From Prasinococcaceae sp. CCMP 1430 (taxonomy: Eukaryota > Plantae > Prasinodermophyta): a stretch of 64,000 nt of DNA. Of this stretch, positions 50,563 to 58,124 are shown in pieces (within the stretch, counting starts at the first letter, position 1; every line of letters begins with the position of its first letter). The DNA is taken from NCBI GenBank assembly GCA_013416795.1, contig RQSC01000806.1, forward strand, positions 62,001-126,000, read 5' to 3'. Under the pieces are notes generated by a model that was given only the letters and a program-made list of their open reading frames with translations, did no database searches and had not been told where the DNA came from. Both the position numbers and the translations under genes were made by a program.

Positions 50563-51668
50563 GCCGCCCGCGCCGTCCCATCCGGCGAGCGCCGCNTACG
50601 CCTACGCCGACGGCTACCATGTCAACGACCTTGGTAACGCCCACCCGCTCCCCTAAGCAAGCACAGCACCACACGCCCCTCATGCGCGCGCGCACCCCTG
50701 CGCACAGCGCCGCCCGCCGCCGCCTGCCGCGCGCTTTTCCCTCGGCGGCCGCGCGTCCTTCCGCTTCCCCCCGGATTCGCCGCCCTCCTTCCGCGAGACC
50801 GCCCGCCCCTACCGAATCCGTCCCCACCTCTCCGCGTGGTGGCGCTTTCGCCGGGCAAAAACTCCGCGAAAAAAAAGACGCGCGCGGGCGCGCGCCGCCC
50901 CAGGCGCGCGCCCGCCCGCAGAGATATTTTCTGCAACTTTTACTTTTTGTTTTTACTTGATGCTCCCTTTTGCGCAGACACGCATGCACAGACGGGGAGA
51001 CAGGCACGCGCCGTTCAACAAGAAGCAGCACGCCAGAGTCCAGCGGCGGGGGGCGGCAGCAACATCAAACTCACGCTGTATCACGGTGCCATCATCGTGC
51101 CATCATTTATTTCATGGGAATGCCCGCTGCTGCAGCCGCAACCGACCGAACCGACGAGGCTCCCGACCCACAGACCGAACCCGGAGACAGCCACAGCCAA
51201 TCAGCCGACCGACCGAGTGGGCGTGCGCGGTGATTCGTTTTTGTTGCGCCCACATCCTATTGGACCATTGCCGTTTTCGTCGCCGGCCGGTGCCGGAAGG
51301 AAGGGCGGGCCTTGTTTTGTCCATCGTTTTCGGGGGTTCGACGGCGACGTTTGGCGCGCGCGGCGCGCGCTCTTTTTTTTTCGGGCGCCGCCGCTGCGCG
51401 CGCGCGCGCGCGCGCGCTTTTCGCCTGGCGCGACAGGGCGGCGCGCTCGCGGNNNNNNNNNNNNNNNNNNNNNNNNNNNNNNNNNNNNNNNNNNNNNNNN
51501 NNNNNNNNNNNNNNNNNNNNNNNNNNNNNNNNNNNNNNNNNNNNNNNNNNNNNNNNNNNNNNNNNNNNNNNNNNNNNNNNNNNNNNNNNNNNNNNNNNNN
51601 NNNNCGCCGCGTTCGACGGGTCGGTGCGGGGGTGGTGCGGGGCGGGGCCGTGGGCGCCGCGACGCGAT

Positions 51669-53131
51669 ATGGCCGAGCTCGGCGCGCACTGCCACGGCAA
51701 GGGGCGCGTGCGCGTCGCGCGCCGCTGGCCGGCGGCGCGCTCGGGCACGGGCCGCGATGAGGTGAGTGGACGCGGGCGGCGCGCGAGCGCGGGCCTGGAG
51801 GCGGGGGGTAAGGGGGAGCGCCGGCGACCCCCAGCATTCGTTCGATGCGATGTGTGCGCCACGCCTCGTCACGCGCGCCTCGGAGTGCGCGCGGGCCACT
51901 GACGCGACCAGCCGCGGCGCACCGCGCCGCACCGCGCGCTGGCGCACGCAGGTGCGCGAGTGGAACGTGCAGGTGCTCCTCGAGAGCGACGCGAACAGAG
52001 TGAGCTACACGCGTGGCGACAACAGCCCGGTGGTGGCGACCGACTCGATCAAGAACTCCGTGTACGTGACCGCGAAGTCGCTCGTGACTCCGACCTCCGC
52101 CGAGGACTTCGCCGCGCTCGTCGCGGCGAGCCTGCTCAGCCGCTACCCACGCCACTCGCGCGTTGTTGCTGAGGTCAGCGAGGTGCCTTGGGTGCGCGCA
52201 AACGGCGGCGTCGCCGGTGACGTGCCGCACGACCACGGCTTTGTGAGCTGCGGCGCCGGCGGGGTGCGCACGGTCACCGCAGAGGCGCGGGCGCTCTCGC
52301 CCGCGATGGGAGAGGTGGAGCTCACGTCGGGCGTGCGCGAGCTGCGCGTGCTCAAGAGCACGCAGAGCGGCTGGGAGGGATTCGTCAGGGACGGGCTCAC
52401 CATGCTGCCGCCCACGCGCGAGCGGATGCTCGCCTCGTCGGTCAGGTGGGTGCGCCGCGTGGCTGGCGTGCCGATGGGCGTGCGCGTAGGATGTGTGGGC
52501 GCAGGCGCTTTCAGGTGGAGGGTCCGGGAGACTGACGTGCGGCGCGCGAACGGCACGCGCGCTCGCCCAACCGCGCGCGCGCCTCGCAGGGCCACGTGGA
52601 CGTACGCCGCCGGAGCTCGGCGCTTCGCGCGCGGCGCGGAGCTCCCGGTCATCTCCCCGGACGTGTCGGTGGGCTGCTATGAGCGCCTGGCCGGCGACGT
52701 CGTGCGCGCGCTCAAGGGCGCCTTTTACGGCCCCCCAAAGGGAGGCCACTACTCGCCGGGCGTGCAGGCGACGCTCTACGAGATGGGTGCCGCCGCGCTC
52801 GCCGCAACTCCTGCGCTGGCGAACATCACGCTCGCGATGCCCAACCTGCACTTCAATCCTTGCCGCATCGGCGCGCCCGTGAGCGTCGTCTTTGAGGTGA
52901 GCCGGCGAGCGCGCCTGGCGCCCCGGCCCGCCGCGCGTCCTTGCAGTCGCGGACGCGAGCATCCTGCCGCGCCTAAGTGTACCGCGGTGCGTGAAACCGT
53001 CCCGGACGGACCGCTGACCGCCGGCGCGCGCCCCTGCTTCCCCCTCCCGGCAGGACGACATCTTCGTCCCGGTCGACGAGCCGCATGGCATGATCCAGGC
53101 GACCGTGCAGAGGCCTAGGGCGCGCATGTGA
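51669..53131 (+). CDS. UOX: Urate oxidase (uricase) with PTS1-like C-terminus; exons 51669..51761, 51952..52445, 52590..52896, 53054..53131
   Basis: HGKGRVRV, GDNSPVVATDSIKNSVY, LKSTQSGWEGF, SPGVQATLY, MPNLHF, IFVPVDEPHGMIQATV; ends ARM*. Confidence 0.93.
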
Positions 53132-53608
53132 GCGCCGCGGCGCTACGTTCGCGGCCGGCGCGCCGCGTCGAGGCGCGCTGGAGCGTTGCCGAGCAGCCCA
53201 GGGGGTTGCGAGGCGCGCGTTGTAGGCGGACTCGCGAGCCTCCCCCTCCCCCCCTCCCTGTACACAATTTGATGTAAAAATGATGCCATTGCGTCAACAG
53301 CCGCGGCCGCGCTGCCCCAAAAAAAAACGCGGCGAGTAAATTTGGAGGATGTCGTTCCGAGACTCATATTGATATGTGATAAGACCACATTTGCGGAATA
53401 AGCACTCATTTTCGTGGCGAGCGTCGTTTTCCAACAATGAGCGCGCGCTCGTCGCACGCTCGAGGCGGGGGAGGGGGCGCCACATGCCGCGCGCGCGCGG
53501 CACGCGGCGCGGGGGGGAGAGGGGGGGGCGTGCGCCCGCGTGTCGACGGCTTGAGCAGGACTGTGTGCCTGCCGCTTTCGCGGGGCTGTAGTGGTGCTGC
53601 CTGTTGCC

Positions 53609-54195
53609 ATGGGGACGAGGCGTCCCGTGAAATGGAATCCGCTCGCGGCGTGCATGCCAGAGCCTGGAAGCGAGTCTATCGCGGGCAACGCCGGCGCTCG
53701 GGCGGGCGGGCCAGGAGGGGCTACAGACGCGCCGCCTGGCGCTGAGAGCATGGCGCGCGTTCCCGACGACCCGACGGTGCCAGGGGAGCCCGCGCCGGGA
53801 CCACGAACGGTGCGTGCTGCCAAGCTGCCACTCGCGAACGCGTGCCTCTCGCGCTGTCGTGCGCGCGTGCCGTGTCGCTGACGATGCGCACGCGCGCGCT
53901 GCTCTTGCCCGCGCGTGAGCAGCCCGAGTGGTGGCGTGCTGAGGCGCTGCGCCTAGAGAAGGAGCGCGAGGCGCTGCAGATCGAGCTTTCGCGGCGCGAG
54001 GAGGTTCTCAACGACCTGTTGGCCGAGGACCGAAAAGATGGGGTCCGGCTCGTAGAGCTCGAGGCCGAAGTCAAGGCCATGGACGAAGAGCTCGCGCAAC
54101 TTCGCCAGCGGCTTGAGCAGGCCTCGCTGGCTCAGTCAAGGCGCGAAGGGGCCGGCGGCTGGAGGAGGTGGTTAAGCGGAGGAGGGGCGGCGTGA
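53609..54195 (+). CDS. Small uncharacterised coiled-coil protein; inferred exons 53609..53809, ~53920..54195
   Basis: Phase-0 ACG|GTGCGT donor and GAG/CAG acceptor; heptad-like EALRLEKEREALQIEL..LAQLRQRLEQ. Confidence 0.55.
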
Positions 54196-54242
54196 ACGCT
54201 TCGCACACAAAAAATAATGCTGCCATCGTATTGTCGCGCGCA

Positions 54243-57038
54243 CTACGCCCTGTTGACGAACGCACGCAGGCGCTCCTCGAAGGTGGGCCCGAGGGCTGCG
54301 ATGCGCTCCGCGAACGCGCCACTCCAGCGCGCGTACATCTCTTGGTCGAAGGGCGATATGCGGTCGACGAGCGCGCGCGCCTCGTCGGGCGACGGTGCCA
54401 GCGCCTCGTTCCCCGGACCCGCGAGGCCCGAAAAATTCACGGCCGGTGCGATCTCGCTGTGATCCCTCTGGACCGTCTCCTTTCTGCTGTTGGCCCTCTT
54501 GTATGCCACATGCCTGAGCCCCGTCGCATCGGAGAGCAGCAGCATCGTGGCATCGAATTGCTCCGTCGTCCCAACAATGTCAAACAGTTCCAAGCCCTCG
54601 TTCAGAGCAGTGAGCATAGTGCGATCGGAGACCAAGGACGAGTTGGCCGCCTGCCGCGCGAGGTACAGTGGCGTTGTGCGTTCGCCCGTCGACTCGTCCA
54701 CCTTGTATGCCTTTGCCCGCGACGGGAAGCCTACATTTGGGTCATGCAGCAGAGTCAGCGTCTGCAGGTTTGGTATTGCCCACTCGTGGAAGGCGCTGCC
54801 GTAGGCCAGCTCGTGCCTCGCGCCTGGAGCTTGATACTGCTGCACGAAGTGGTGGTAGTACGACACGTAGAACGCCCGTGGCTCGCGCACTATCGTCAGG
54901 AGCACCGTCTTGCACGCGGACCCGCTTCGCCTCTCGCGGTCGCGCAGCGCTGCGATGCGCGACAGGAACTTGTCGTCTGCTCGCATGGGCTGCGGCGGGT
55001 GCAACTCGACGAATACGCGCGGATGCGCTGATGGGTCTTTCTCGATGTCCGTCAGCAGCCGCGCCAGCGAACACCGGCGCTCGCCCTTGGCCAGCTTGTA
55101 AACCGTCCCGCCTTCCGTGGAGGCCCTCGTGCATGGCACGTCCTCGTGTACGTCGGCTGTGTTCATGGTGTTGGAACCCCAATAGACAACATCGTCCCAC
55201 ACCCCCAGTCGGCGGAACATATTGCGGACCGTCGTGCCACCCGTCTTCTCGACGTGATAAAAGAAGACTCGGACGCATTCGCTCGGAGCGGTGATGACTG
55301 ACCCGGGCGGAGGCTCTTGCGGTGGCTGCTCCTTGCACGCCGAGGGCGGCACAGGCACCAGCGGGGGAGAAGCCAGCGAGGGCGACGGCCCTTCGGAGCG
55401 CCCGCTCGGTGCACCACCGTCCCGGCTGGCTGCATGCTCGGCGGACGGCCACCGTTCAAACTTGCGCTTTGCGCGCTCGCCAAGCACCTGAAGAAGCACG
55501 CCGACGGCGTCGTTATCGAACACGGCCGCGGCGGAGATGCGATCGCCGATGGCTTCGGTGCCGCGCGGCGTGTGGCCGCTGCGCGTCGCGCTCATTAACG
55601 GCTCCCGATACAGGCTACTGTACAGAAGCTTCTCCCAGACGCGTGCTTTCGCCATTGCTGCTTGCATGCGCTCCACGTCGGAGCTGTCGAGTGCAGCCAA
55701 GCGCCCTGGCAGGTGCTCCACCTCGTCGAGTGCCGCGCTCAAAGAAAACTCTTCCCACGTGATTCCCCCGGGACCGGAGAGCGGGGGTTCAACGCGCCTG
55801 CCAGCGCGACCCCCGCCCACGAATACGGGGAGGCACCCAAACAGTGCTGCGTGCAGCAGTGTTGCCTCGTCGCCCCCGAAGGTTGTGCGAGGCACAACGC
55901 AGAAGACCGCTCGCCGCATCTCCTTCGCCATGTTTGCGCGCACCGGCCGCCTGCAGCTGCCGACAGTGGCCGATCCCGCCGCTCGCAGGGCCGCAATGCC
56001 GCCGACTGCGACTGGCCCCGTGGCTCCGCCGCTGCGGCTGTCGCCGATGCCTGCGCGCGCCATCTCACCCTCGCGGTAGGTTCGCAGCAACTTGGCGCAG
56101 CACGCTGCCTGCTCGTGCTCGCGCGCCTCCTGGCAGTCCAGGTAATTGAGCACGCGCGCCCCCGGCATCGTGCGGAGACGATTCCACACGTGTGCGGCGC
56201 CCGTCGCGACCGCGTTTCCGTCCGCGCTGCCACCTGCGCCTCCCTCGTCCGCATCGCATATTTGCGTGCCCCTCATGACGCCTGCGTAGAACAGACGCGT
56301 GTCGCGGGCTGGACCTCGACTACCCCCCGCCTCCTCCCAGCCTGTCGGCCGCTGCTGTTCTGGAGTGTACGGAGACCAGAGCAGCAGTTCCTGTCGTGTG
56401 TAGCCGCCATCGTTAGGCAACAACGCCGGCGGCGTATCAAGCGGCGGGAGTGCTACGTCCTTGCCCGTCTGGAAGCACGCCCGGCAAGGGACGAGGCTGG
56501 CAGGCCCTGCGTATGTGCGCGGCTCGCCGCGCGCAGTCACCCCACCACCGCGAGCCGCCTCGGGGCCGTCGCGGAGGCCAGCGGGCGTGAGGTGCACCAG
56601 CGCGCGCGTGGGCGAGGCAGGGTCGTAGTGGGAATTCGACGATTCGAGCAAGTCGACGCCAGTATCCGAGATTGGCACACTGCCGCCAACGTCTCCCCGG
56701 GGGGTGTAGAGCACCAAGTGCCTCGCCTGCCCAGCCGCAGCCGTCCGGTTGAAGAATGGGTAACGTCCTCGGACGTAGTCGAGAGTCGCGGCTCTGGCAC
56801 CGGGGTGGGCCAGGGCCGGCAGCGGCACGTACCAGTAGTCGGCCTCCTCGGGGTTGTCGACATGCGCCGCGTCCGATCGCAGCCGGGTCACGAGCGCCTC
56901 GCACTCGTGCGAGGCTGCGCAGTGCGTGTGCAACGCAGGCGGCAGCGAGTACACGTACACGCGAGCAGCCGCAGGTGCATCCCCTCCCGCGGCGGCCACC
57001 GCAGCCGCCGCAATCGAGACTATGGAGAGCGCCGCCAT
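54243..57038 (-). CDS. Secretory-pathway exostosin (GT47) glycosyltransferase fused to a C-terminal sulfotransferase-like domain
   Basis: Signal-like MAALSIVSIAAAAVAAA; GT47 motifs RVYVYSLP, NPEEADYWYVP, MRRAVFCVVP, GCLPVFV; sulfotransferase motifs FFYHVEKTGGTT, TIVREP..YVSYY, FDIVGTTEQFDATMLLL; single 931-aa frame. Confidence 0.82.
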   Translation of the reverse strand: MAALSIVSIAAAAVAAAGGDAPAAARVYVYSLPPALHTHCAASHECEALVTRLRSDAAHVDNPEEADYWYVPLPALAHPGARAATLDYVRGRYPFFNRTAAAGQARHLVLYTPRGDVGGSVPISDTGVDLLESSNSHYDPASPTRALVHLTPAGLRDGPEAARGGGVTARGEPRTYAGPASLVPCRACFQTGKDVALPPLDTPPALLPNDGGYTRQELLLWSPYTPEQQRPTGWEEAGGSRGPARDTRLFYAGVMRGTQICDADEGGAGGSADGNAVATGAAHVWNRLRTMPGARVLNYLDCQEAREHEQAACCAKLLRTYREGEMARAGIGDSRSGGATGPVAVGGIAALRAAGSATVGSCRRPVRANMAKEMRRAVFCVVPRTTFGGDEATLLHAALFGCLPVFVGGGRAGRRVEPPLSGPGGITWEEFSLSAALDEVEHLPGRLAALDSSDVERMQAAMAKARVWEKLLYSSLYREPLMSATRSGHTPRGTEAIGDRISAAAVFDNDAVGVLLQVLGERAKRKFERWPSAEHAASRDGGAPSGRSEGPSPSLASPPLVPVPPSACKEQPPQEPPPGSVITAPSECVRVFFYHVEKTGGTTVRNMFRRLGVWDDVVYWGSNTMNTADVHEDVPCTRASTEGGTVYKLAKGERRCSLARLLTDIEKDPSAHPRVFVELHPPQPMRADDKFLSRIAALRDRERRSGSACKTVLLTIVREPRAFYVSYYHHFVQQYQAPGARHELAYGSAFHEWAIPNLQTLTLLHDPNVGFPSRAKAYKVDESTGERTTPLYLARQAANSSLVSDRTMLTALNEGLELFDIVGTTEQFDATMLLLSDATGLRHVAYKRANSRKETVQRDHSEIAPAVNFSGLAGPGNEALAPSPDEARALVDRISPFDQEMYARWSGAFAERIAALGPTFEERLRAFVNRA

Positions 57039-57677
57039 GAGCGGGAGCGGCGGAGGGGGCGACCGTCGCCGCCCGCATGGCCGCCGCGGCCACGGCAGCG
57101 CCGCTGCGCGCGGTGTCATCGCGCGTGCGGCGCGCGCGCGCTGGCGGGGCGCCCGCAGGGCCGCGTCCCCCCACCCCCTGGGTGTGCGCCGGGGAACGGC
57201 CGCCCTCTGAGAACGATCGCGTCTCGGGCGCTCGCGCGTGTGCACTAGTCTCCCGTGGCTTGATATGTTTGCATTTCGATTGCATACCTATTCGTCGCTG
57301 ATCAGTCCGTAGACCGCAGAGGCATGCCGCCATCGGAACCGGCGTTGCGCGGCGCGAACTCGTCACCGGCGGAAGTTTTTCCGGCGCGAAAGAAAAGAGG
57401 GAAGCGCCGCGCAGGGGAGGCGCGCGGCGGCGCCACAGCGTGCACGCTAGGTGCGGCAGGGGTGGCGCGTGGGACGAGCATCGAGGACGAGCGAGCCGCC
57501 TTGGGGATCGAGCCTCGCGGGAGAAGGGGCCACGCAGCGGGGCGGGCCTGGAGCCGCCGGCCGAGCGCTGTGCCGCCGTCGCGGCAGCCCGCGCAGCGCC
57601 GCCGTGTTGAGAGGGGCGCCGCAGTACACATTGTTGTCGCTCCATCCGCATTTGAAAAGTCGGCGCTGCTGAGGGAG

Positions 57678-58124
57678 ATGGCTGCGGCTGTCGCCGACGA
57701 GAAGGCGGCTGTGCTGGCGCATGTTGAGGGCGCGTCGGGCAGCGGTGTGCCCACTGCGGTCGAGGTGGAGCCCCCGCCGTCTGACGCCGCCCATCCTGAT
57801 CAGGGCCCTGCGGACAACGTCCCGTTCGGCCACGTGCAGGCCCCACGCGTGGACCTCGCCAGAGGCGAGACGCTCGTGTGCCCCGCGGGGAAGCCCAAAT
57901 TCATCGGCGCCACGCGTGGCAGGCACCCCATCCAGGTTTATTGCGAGGGCGGGTGCGGCTTTCGAGGCGAGGCGCGCATGGAGAAGCGCTGGGGCGGTGG
58001 GTCCTGGATGTGGAGCTTGATGACACTCGGGATCGGCGCGCCGTGGGGCAAGTGCGTTGCTGGCGACGTGGTGCACGTGTGTCCTCAGTGTGGGCGCGAG
58101 CTCGCGGTGAGCGCGATCTTTTAA
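57678..58124 (+). CDS. LITAF-domain protein
   Basis: C-terminal P.QVYCEGGC..GGGSWMWSLMTLGIG..DVVHVCPQCG.EL: a Zn knuckle pair flanking a hydrophobic segment. Confidence 0.75.
   Translation: MAAAVADEKAAVLAHVEGASGSGVPTAVEVEPPPSDAAHPDQGPADNVPFGHVQAPRVDLARGETLVCPAGKPKFIGATRGRHPIQVYCEGGCGFRGEARMEKRWGGGSWMWSLMTLGIGAPWGKCVAGDVVHVCPQCGRELAVSAIF

Follow-up and report, generated by a model that had tools for sequence, protein, structure and literature searches.

A predicted single-chain GT47-sulfotransferase protein in the prasinodermophyte alga Prasinococcaceae sp. CCMP 1430

Gene Structure and Reading Frame

The window analyzed here is a stretch of 64,000 nucleotides from Prasinococcaceae sp. CCMP 1430 (assembly GCA_013416795.1, contig RQSC01000806.1, positions 62,001 to 126,000 of the forward strand), and all coordinates refer to it. 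Its minus strand carries an open reading frame that begins with an ATG at 57036–57038, ends with a stop codon at 54243–54245 and runs without interruption between them, as stated in the initial annotation of an intronless ORF encoding 931 aa. From the N- to the C-terminus, the product consists of a hydrophobic start, the GT47/exostosin domain, a Pro/Ser-rich linker of 56 residues and a C-terminal domain of ~346 residues (Table 1).

Table 1. Features of the 931-codon gene and its product, with positions in the window and the evidence for each.
Feature	Position	Strand	Evidence and remarks
Whole CDS, 931 codons + stop	54243..57038	minus	Uninterrupted; identical 931-aa product also encoded on several scaffolds of TARA ocean metagenomes and in Logan assemblies
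Possible 27-codon N-terminal extension, Arg/Pro-rich	57039..57119	minus	In-frame upstream ATG at 57117–57119
Hydrophobic N-terminal segment, residues 1–19	56982..57038	minus	Kyte-Doolittle 19-residue mean 1.9–2.2
GT47/exostosin glycosyltransferase domain (predicted), residues ~25–520	55479..56966	minus	Pfam PF03016; low-complexity Gly/Ala-rich insertions mid-domain
GT47 profile match 1, residues 25–100 (profile 5–101 of 293)	56739..56966	minus	E 7e-5 alone
GT47 profile match 2, residues 364–445 (profile 216–288 of 293)	55704..55949	minus	E 2e-4 alone
Pro/Ser/Gly-rich linker, residues 530–585	55284..55451	minus	Crossed without a joint by a metatranscriptome contig
PAPS-type carbohydrate O-sulfotransferase domain, HS2ST/HS6ST-like (predicted), residues 586–931	54246..55283	minus	Profile and structure
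5'-phosphosulfate-binding loop, residues 592–603 (FFYHVEKTGGTT); H595, K598, G601	55230..55265	minus	Near-invariant columns; aligned to HS6ST loop
E678-L-H680, candidate catalytic base	54999..55007	minus	H680 aligned with HS2ST His142 and the matching HS6ST histidine
3'-phosphate-binding motif, residues 718–726 (REPRAFYVS); R718 invariant, P720, S726	54861..54887	minus	Family columns; HS6ST/HS2ST alignment

The region has a G+C content of 67%, long ORFs arising by chance are common in it with many overlapping ones in the ORF listing, and the other frames hold chance ORFs of 450–670 codons. Only the 931-codon frame is backed twice, independently, by homology at the level of a domain, which rules out a chance ORF; we take it to be a single intron-free gene.

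The hydrophobic N-terminal signal and the Pro-rich linker described in the initial annotation were both recovered. The 19-residue Kyte-Doolittle mean peaks at 2.2 over residues 1–19, which are predicted to form a signal anchor or a signal peptide, and the upstream extension, if used, would lengthen the protein by a tail on the cytosolic side of the membrane anchor. This hydropathy peak and the optional basic upstream tail match the type II-like anchor or signal looked for in Golgi GT47 enzymes.

Transcripts and Recurrence of the Reading Frame

Metatranscriptome contigs (X16) were colinear along the ORF, and one of them (record 3, 55227–55572) bridges the linker, starting where the GT47 domain ends (residue ~490) and running without rearrangement through the linker to the sulfotransferase motif (residue ~604). 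Transcripts showing two separate genes, which had been named in advance as evidence against a fusion, were not seen, and no splice joints were reported in the ORF among the contig matches. The RNA support consists of short assembled contigs with a depth of 3–11, from which neither the strand nor the ends of the transcript can be read and which may include carried-over DNA; none of them spanned both whole domains or covered the 5' 316 bases. Among the metatranscriptome contigs matched, none reached the possible upstream extension (57039–57119) and none fell in the flank at 53600–54183.

The same 931-aa product is contained in an 18-member cluster (at least 90% identity) from TARA metagenomes and Logan. 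A further contig, L001 ("chicken_3", coverage 1.2), was first taken as a relative with 60–83% identity that had kept the fusion, and was then rejected. Using detailed tblastn it proved near-identical wherever it was in frame, with repeated frame hops, so it was judged to be a badly assembled sequence of the same species and was dropped as independent evidence.

The GT47/Exostosin Module

The GT47/exostosin domain claimed for the N-terminal part was confirmed by the Pfam model PF03016, which scored 37.9 bits with the full protein and 39.9 bits with the N-terminal 600 aa (gathering cut-off: 33.4). The two matches lie in the correct order and the best-scoring stretch is the C-terminal block; profile positions ~101–216 are unmatched, and residues ~100–365 are divergent with insertions. 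GT47 clusters made up 23 of the 30 language-model look-alikes of this part in the Atlas (best score 0.96). From these matches we assign the N-terminal module to the GT47/exostosin family.

Other searches with this part gave little. The word-based homologue search found nothing, the full-length query returned only the protein's own cluster, and scanning metagenomes with the entire protein brought up no relatives. The phmmer search against the PDB produced chance matches only, the solved exostosins not being matched directly, and the NCBIfam scan of the protein yielded no match. The single-sequence AF2 model of the GT47 part had a pLDDT of 34.5, too low to be used for the GT-B fold.

The Sulfotransferase Module

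The C-terminal domain was searched exhaustively with HMMER using residues 580–931 as query, which returned 190 homologues (representatives) at E ≤0.001. A profile of 48 homologues matched HS6ST3 (5t03) over profile positions 11–300 of 306, and the same profile matched HS2ST at E 9e-4. The AF2 model of the domain reached a pLDDT of 81.4 and a pTM of 0.85, with low-confidence insertions at residues ~620–660, 780–800, and 855–880. The top seven Foldseek matches of this model were HS2ST/HS6ST chains (probability 1.00), and VIA-align placed HS2ST (3F5F) over 225 aligned residues at an rmsd of 3.8; HS6ST (5T05) followed with Z 11.5 and every other sulfotransferase scored at most 8.4. Fold matches in the Atlas were to eukaryotic and bacterial Sulfotransfer_2/Gal-3-O-sulfotransferase clusters (TM up to 0.71). 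The lack of any HMM or structural sulfotransferase match, which the initial annotation had offered as a refutation, is thus contradicted by the matches to HS6ST (E 7.9e-15) and HS2ST (Z 15.2).

No curated Pfam sulfotransferase model scored above threshold with the protein; Sulfotransfer_1 reached 12–14 bits (cut-off: 22; E 0.03–0.1), and this sub-threshold match lies at the 3'-phosphate-binding motif. The Sulfotransfer_2/Gal-3-O-sulfotransferase models that had been suggested for this domain gave no direct match to the protein and hold only for a few homologues, weakly: in the Pfam scan of 50 homologues PF06990 was found weakly in six and PF03567 in two.

Both cofactor-binding motifs that had been proposed (5'-PSB-like and 3'-PB-like) are present and fall on invariant or near-invariant columns of the family (H595, K598, G601, R718, P720, S726). 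K598 and G601 of the phosphosulfate loop occupy columns conserved in at least 90% of the family, as do P720 and S726 of the 3'-phosphate motif, in which R718 is invariant; the K598, G601, R718, and S726 set matches the defining sulfotransferase residues listed in a review (PMC11625862). H680 falls in the profile column of His142, the catalytic base of HS2ST (PMC6094399). The three closest sulfotransferase relatives have Arg at this position, and the role of H680 in the subfamily is therefore not certain. The structure prediction that had been recommended as a check gave, on the sulfotransferase side, an HS2ST/HS6ST-like fold; the PAPS-binding lysine, the Arg/Ser pair and the histidine are all present in the sequence. 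Judged by profile, motifs and predicted structure, the C-terminal domain is best assigned to the PAPS-dependent O-sulfotransferases of the HS2ST/HS6ST structural class.

Distribution and Putative Origin of the Fusion

The joining of GT47 and sulfotransferase was not found in the other organisms searched. A GT47 domain was absent from the best 150 of the 190 sulfotransferase relatives, from the 50 homologues scanned with Pfam (including 14 of the 15 matches of at least 600 aa), and, again by Pfam, from the 10 longest ORFs of 35 related metagenome loci. The search pattern for these loci was taken from a six-sequence alignment (A3), the broader alignment (A2) being too diverse. A local phmmer comparison of the GT47 part with the retrieved sulfotransferase relatives also gave no match. 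The homologue and metagenome searches turned up no diverged orthologue that shares the fusion, so evolutionary conservation lends the architecture no support. The literature search found no described fusion of a sulfotransferase with GT47 or with another glycosyltransferase, and none of the terms GT47, exostosin and sulfotransferase occurs in the parts of the supplements of the Prasinoderma genome paper that were available.

P0017 and P0019, the nearest relatives among the sulfotransferases, stand alone and carry a segment resembling a membrane anchor at the N-terminus. In our reading the protein unites two enzyme types known from the Golgi in a fusion restricted to its lineage. The gene probably goes back to a free-standing type II sulfotransferase whose anchor and stem were lost and which became attached to the end of a GT47 gene.

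Proposed Function and Alternative Explanations

The explanation that we favor, and hold to be fairly probable, is that one gene encodes two catalytic modules that couple the elongation or branching of a glycan with its sulfation. The product would be a membrane-anchored, lumen-facing protein of the secretory pathway, probably of the Golgi, with both modules in one chain. The GT47 module would transfer a sugar from a nucleotide-sugar donor, and the PAPS-dependent sulfotransferase module would sulfate a sugar hydroxyl. The flexible linker of ~55 residues may tether the modules and keep the sulfotransferase at the growing chain, so that the most likely mode of action would be elongation or branching coupled to sulfation of the same extracellular glycan. 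Candidate targets are a wall or mucilage polysaccharide or the glycan of a glycoprotein.

That the fusion is an artefact of the gene model, with two adjacent genes, or exons with an unrecognized in-frame intron between them, mistaken for a single ORF in stop-poor, GC-rich DNA, we regard as very improbable. The chance ORFs on the other frames of the region would fit such an error, as would the linker, which has no codon-position G+C contrast (residues 532–561: GC2 0.77, GC3 0.73); however, the RNA contig crosses the linker colinearly with no joints reported, many independent assemblies carry the same ORF, and the start of the sulfotransferase domain has no in-frame ATG with an anchor of its own.

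The remaining alternatives accept the single chain and question the coupling of two activities. The GT47 module may have lost catalysis and serve in glycan binding, oligomerization or Golgi retention, presenting the sulfotransferase, then the only catalytic module, to its substrate. The middle of the domain, which lies outside the Pfam profile match and is broken by Gly/Ala-rich insertions, is consistent with this, a precomputed public annotation rates the GT47 match as merely faint, and the search turned up no GT47 homologue similar enough for an alignment. We nevertheless think it distinctly unlikely, as the GT47 profile is still matched at its two ends, including the best-scoring C-terminal block, the language-model features score as high as given above with GT47 clusters, and there is no sign that specific catalytic residues were lost. 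Lumenal enzymes are often clipped at disordered linkers or dibasic stretches, and the chain could likewise be made as one and work as two enzymes, either after cleavage at or near the linker or with the modules acting on different glycans or in unrelated steps, the fusion then ensuring only co-expression and co-localization. The linker is long and probably disordered, a dibasic stretch (residues 522–527) stands just before it, and the closest sulfotransferases stand alone. This too seems unlikely to us: no evidence for cleavage was found, and a cleaved sulfotransferase part would be without an anchor, unlike its nearest relatives.

Significance for Sulfated Glycan Synthesis

We know of no green-algal polysaccharide sulfotransferase that has been matched to its substrate, of no characterized algal GT47 enzyme, and of no polymer identified in the thick wall of this alga. 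The sulfotransferases expected for rhamnose, xylose, arabinose, and galactose have yet to be identified in green algae (PMC11625862), and according to the Prasinoderma genome paper, synthases for cellulose, mannan, xyloglucan or xylan were not found (PMC7455551). In a natural fusion a particular GT47 comes with its particular sulfotransferase, which means that donor, acceptor, and product can be sought with a single recombinant protein. The fusion offers a testable entry and a direct lead into the synthesis of sulfated surface glycans in a lineage of unknown wall chemistry.

Algal sulfotransferases are described as lying outside current Pfam models (PMC11625862), and the homologues retrieved here form a sizeable algal family that is invisible to these models. 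As a consequence, fusions of this kind would carry no annotation other than "exostosin." For work on the enzymatic synthesis of sulfated oligosaccharides, too, a coupled transferase-sulfotransferase would be of interest. A more speculative extension, which we consider rather doubtful, is that the alga builds a sulfated, glycosaminoglycan-like surface polymer through a set of single-chain glycosyltransferase-sulfotransferases, of which the GT47 fusion would be one and in which addition and sulfation would be physically coupled. If true, the deepest branch of the green plants would make such a polymer by a biosynthetic principle so far undescribed among sulfated polysaccharides.

Comparison with Known Systems

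Among GT47 proteins, EXT1 and EXT2 are animal two-domain enzymes (GT47 and GT64), and MUR3, IRX10, and ARAD1 are wall enzymes of plants. Like EXT1/EXT2, the algal protein joins GT47 to a second catalytic module, but the partner is a sulfotransferase and not a GT64 transferase. With the exostosins and the plant GT47 Golgi enzymes it shares a PF03016 domain behind a hydrophobic anchor; unlike in these, the middle of the algal domain is divergent with insertions. NDST likewise has a C-terminal sulfotransferase in a bifunctional Golgi chain that modifies glycans, but the sulfotransferase domain of NDST fits the model less well (Z 8.0–8.4) and is of the N-sulfotransferase/3-O-sulfotransferase class with a deacetylase as partner, whereas the algal domain is 2-O/6-O-like and is paired with a glycosyltransferase.

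Brown algae have a fucokinase-GDP-fucose pyrophosphorylase fusion, and Nemacystus decipiens a fusion of a sulfotransferase with an alpha/beta-hydrolase (PMC6418280). These resemble the protein described here as algal fusions of consecutive or related steps of sulfated-polysaccharide synthesis with transcript support, and differ in their partners and lineage. A glycosyltransferase-sulfotransferase fusion is described neither in that paper nor in a brown-algal survey (PMC11468063) or the review of polysaccharide sulfotransferases (PMC11625862).

The closest comparison for the C-terminal domain is with HS2ST (3F5F, 4NDZ) and HS6ST3 (5T03, 5T05), with which it shares the predicted fold, the Lys/Gly phosphosulfate loop, the Arg...Ser 3'-phosphate motif, and the position of the catalytic histidine. 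It differs from them in its extra insertions, in having no Pfam model that reaches threshold and in following a glycosyltransferase on the same chain; the animal HS2ST and HS6ST are stand-alone type II proteins. Orthology to animal EXT, HS2ST or HS6ST was not supported, given 13–18% identity to the sulfotransferases and no direct match of GT47 to the solved exostosins. From this comparison of sequences, the fusion protein is best regarded as one that would work like the heparan-sulfate enzymes and not as a member of the heparan pathway.

Reading frame and domain layout

The fusion gene was read as an uninterrupted ORF of 931 codons on the minus strand (54243-57038; ATG at 57036-57038, stop at 54243-54245), in agreement with the intronless ORF of the initial annotation, whose N-terminal hydrophobic signal and Pro-rich linker were also recovered from the translation (see table). 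Because long chance ORFs are common in this window (G+C approximately 67%; overlapping ORFs of 450-670 codons in the region), the length of the ORF is by itself no evidence; it is the two independent domain-level homologies that single out its frame. Codon-position G+C was coding-like over most of the ORF and uninformative in the linker. A second in-frame ATG 27 codons upstream (57117-57119) is a candidate start that would add an Arg/Pro-rich tail before the hydrophobic segment, and initiation there would give the predicted protein a classical type II topology.

Predicted layout of the protein encoded by the fusion gene
Feature	Residues	Frame	Basis
Hydrophobic segment	1-19	minus-strand ORF	19-residue hydropathy mean up to 2.2
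GT47-like region	~25-520	minus-strand ORF	translation and Pfam
Pro/Ser/Gly-rich linker	530-585	minus-strand ORF	translation
C-terminal domain	586-931	minus-strand ORF	translation

Assignment of the C-terminal domain

The sole Pfam match of the C-terminal domain was a sub-threshold hit to Sulfotransfer_1 over the 3'-phosphate motif (12-14 bits vs. a cut-off of 22). An exhaustive search with HMMER, run with residues 580-931 against 1.84 billion cluster representatives, retrieved 190 relatives at E ≤ 0.001 (42 at ≤ 1e-10); weak Pfam matches among the 50 homologues scanned were to PF06990 in six and PF03567 in two. R718 was invariant in an alignment of 48 relatives and the query (A2), and H595, K598, G601, P720, S726, and G840 were conserved in at least 90%, as was E678 in a wider homologue alignment. 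PAPS sulfotransferases are defined by a lysine and glycine of the phosphosulfate loop and an arginine and serine binding the 3'-phosphate (PMC11625862), and these residues are present among the conserved columns; the 5'-PSB-like and 3'-PB-like motifs initially proposed correspond to H595, K598, and G601 and to R718, P720, and S726, respectively.

The A2 profile matched zebrafish HS6ST (5T03; E-value 7.9e-15, profile positions 11-300 of 306) and chicken HS2ST (3F5F, 4NDZ; E-value 9e-4). In these profile alignments the H680 column pairs with His142 of the HS2ST "HGH" motif, a putative catalytic base whose alanine mutant is inactive (PMC6094399). Arginine occupies this position (54999-55001 in the window) in the three closest stand-alone relatives (P0017, P0018, P0019; six-sequence alignment A3), while the query, like most members, has histidine; this subfamily may use a different base or be inactive.

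An AlphaFold2 model built from A2 was confident (pLDDT 81.4, pTM 0.85), and its seven best Foldseek matches in the PDB were HS2ST and HS6ST chains (probability 1.00). With VIA-align the Z score was 15.2 for HS2ST (225 residues, rmsd 3.8) and 11.5 for HS6ST, and at most 8.4 for all other sulfotransferases, in comparisons that included NDST structures. A fold search of the Atlas retrieved eukaryotic (haptophyte, chlorophyte) and bacterial Sulfotransfer_2/Gal-3-O-sulfotransferase clusters (TM up to 0.71). Together, the profile, model, and fold matches and the conserved residues uphold the sulfotransferase assignment and place the domain among the carbohydrate sulfotransferases of the 2-O/6-O-like class. 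Its likeness to both HS2ST and HS6ST makes no prediction of the sulfated position. The domain sits in an algal branch outside the current Pfam models.

Putative function and alternative explanations

The best-supported reading of the sequence is a bifunctional, membrane-anchored, lumen-facing enzyme, in which the GT47 module would add a sugar and the tethered 2-O/6-O-like module would sulfate the same glycan with PAPS. A rival is that the GT47 module is inactive and only binds. Its placement in the GT47 family is sound: PF03016 (Exostosin_GT47), proposed in the initial annotation, scored above its curated cut-off of 33.4 with the full protein (37.9 bits) and the N-terminal 600 residues (39.9 bits). 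A sub-piece scan gave two separately significant stretches in the correct order (residues 25-100, profile 5-101; residues 364-445, profile 216-288 of 293), and the residues between (~100-365), where Gly/Ala-rich insertions occur, had no PF03016 match. Of the 30 named clusters that lay closest in a protein-language-model search with residues 20-530, 23 were GT47 families (best score 0.96; 207-211 of 256 features shared with the three best). Direct comparison of the GT47 part with solved structures gave no match, a word-based homologue search found no relatives, and a model predicted from the single sequence was too poor to use (pLDDT 34.5).

Returning to the bifunctional enzyme, the least likely alternative is a gene-model artefact. 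The identical 931-residue product represents an 18-member cluster at ≥90% identity in ENA and Logan assemblies, and several TARA ocean metagenome scaffolds carry the gene between the same neighbours, syntaxin and uricase. All 14 contig pieces from four marine metatranscriptome runs, which are short, assembled, and of low depth, carry no strand or transcript-end information, and may include DNA carry-over, were colinear with the genome and none had a joint. They span 54184-56722 with small gaps, leaving the 5' 316 bases of the ORF uncovered, and no piece from these runs fell in the flank 53600-54183. One of them, of 346 bases (55227-55572), reaches from residue ~490 across the entire linker to residue ~604 in the sulfotransferase loop. 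Two separate genes did not emerge from these contigs, and where the sulfotransferase domain begins the translation revealed no ATG combined with an anchor. Both homologies and this linker-crossing contig support the proposed single-chain architecture; a further rival accepts that chain and would have the two modules cleaved apart or acting independently.

A 1190-base metatranscriptome contig (X16 record 2) meets the region only in two matches of 18-28 bases on opposite strands (54364-54381 and 57405-57432). Rather than a joint in a transcript, this is probably chance similarity of GC-rich low-complexity sequence, or else the contig is chimeric. The uricase (51112-53127) is broken by a run of N (51453-51604) in the window and was called as two pieces (149 and 226 aa) in metagenome scaffolds (L002:7917-9185), which suggests an intron or assembly gap rather than two genes. 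Two plus-strand flanking ORFs, 53842-54195 (117 aa, coiled-coil-like) and 57324-58124 (266 aa, Cys-rich C-terminus), had no Pfam family recorded in these scaffolds. No tie of the syntaxin and uricase neighbours to glycan synthesis was found.

Distribution and significance of the fusion

Among the best 150 of the 190 sulfotransferase representatives 15 had at least 600 residues, and Pfam scanning of 14 of these, among 50 proteins, detected no GT47. No likeness to the N-terminal domain occurred among retrieved proteins outside the self-cluster, and a JGI metagenome scan with the whole fusion protein gave no match. A scan with the six-sequence alignment yielded 35 loci (all 58-74% G+C), the ten longest sulfotransferase-bearing ORFs of which lacked GT47. 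The closest relatives share 33-36% identity, stand alone, and are 360-448 residues long; P0017 and P0019 have N-terminal anchor-like segments. Since the sulfotransferase-side searches gave no second fusion and the nearest relatives stand alone, the fusion looks derived and restricted to the lineage of this alga. Some relatives (A1 homologues; L028:3144-5021) carry no glycosyltransferase but EF-hand domains or, at the C-terminus, a ShK domain, and the algal family thus recombines with several partner modules.

One metagenome contig (L001:1-3074), a candidate for a more distant relative with the fusion retained, was rejected as such; it stems from the same species, with many frameshifts in its assembly, and therefore gives no independent support. 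The assembly it belongs to bears a chicken-sample label (ENA ERZ28548065, record "chicken_3__NODE_79419", coverage 1.2), and the gene on it is near-identical where in frame, with repeated frameshifts. Contamination may account for the algal DNA, as may an origin in feed or water; the assembly is prone to errors at this low coverage. The contig's 325-aa fragment (P0001) was the best match of the representative search, the 931-aa protein (P0002) being absent from the matches listed, and apparently stands for the fusion gene's cluster at 50% identity.

Prasinoderma coloniale, whose published G+C (69.8%) is matched by that of the window, is reported to have thick walls of unknown chemistry; its genome paper (PMC7455551) recovered none of the enzymes for cellulose, mannan, xyloglucan, or xylan and makes no mention of sulfotransferases. 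No description of a glycosyltransferase and a sulfotransferase on a single chain was found in the literature searched, and the novelty of the predicted protein is the fusion of two known enzyme families, GT47 and 2-O/6-O-like sulfotransferases. For the synthesis of sulfated glycans in algae it is a concrete lead, and one that can be expressed. Golgi precedents for a pair of catalytic modules on a single chain are EXT1/2 (GT47 and GT64) and NDST (deacetylase and sulfotransferase), and the predicted fusion protein resembles both in joining two putatively catalytic modules.
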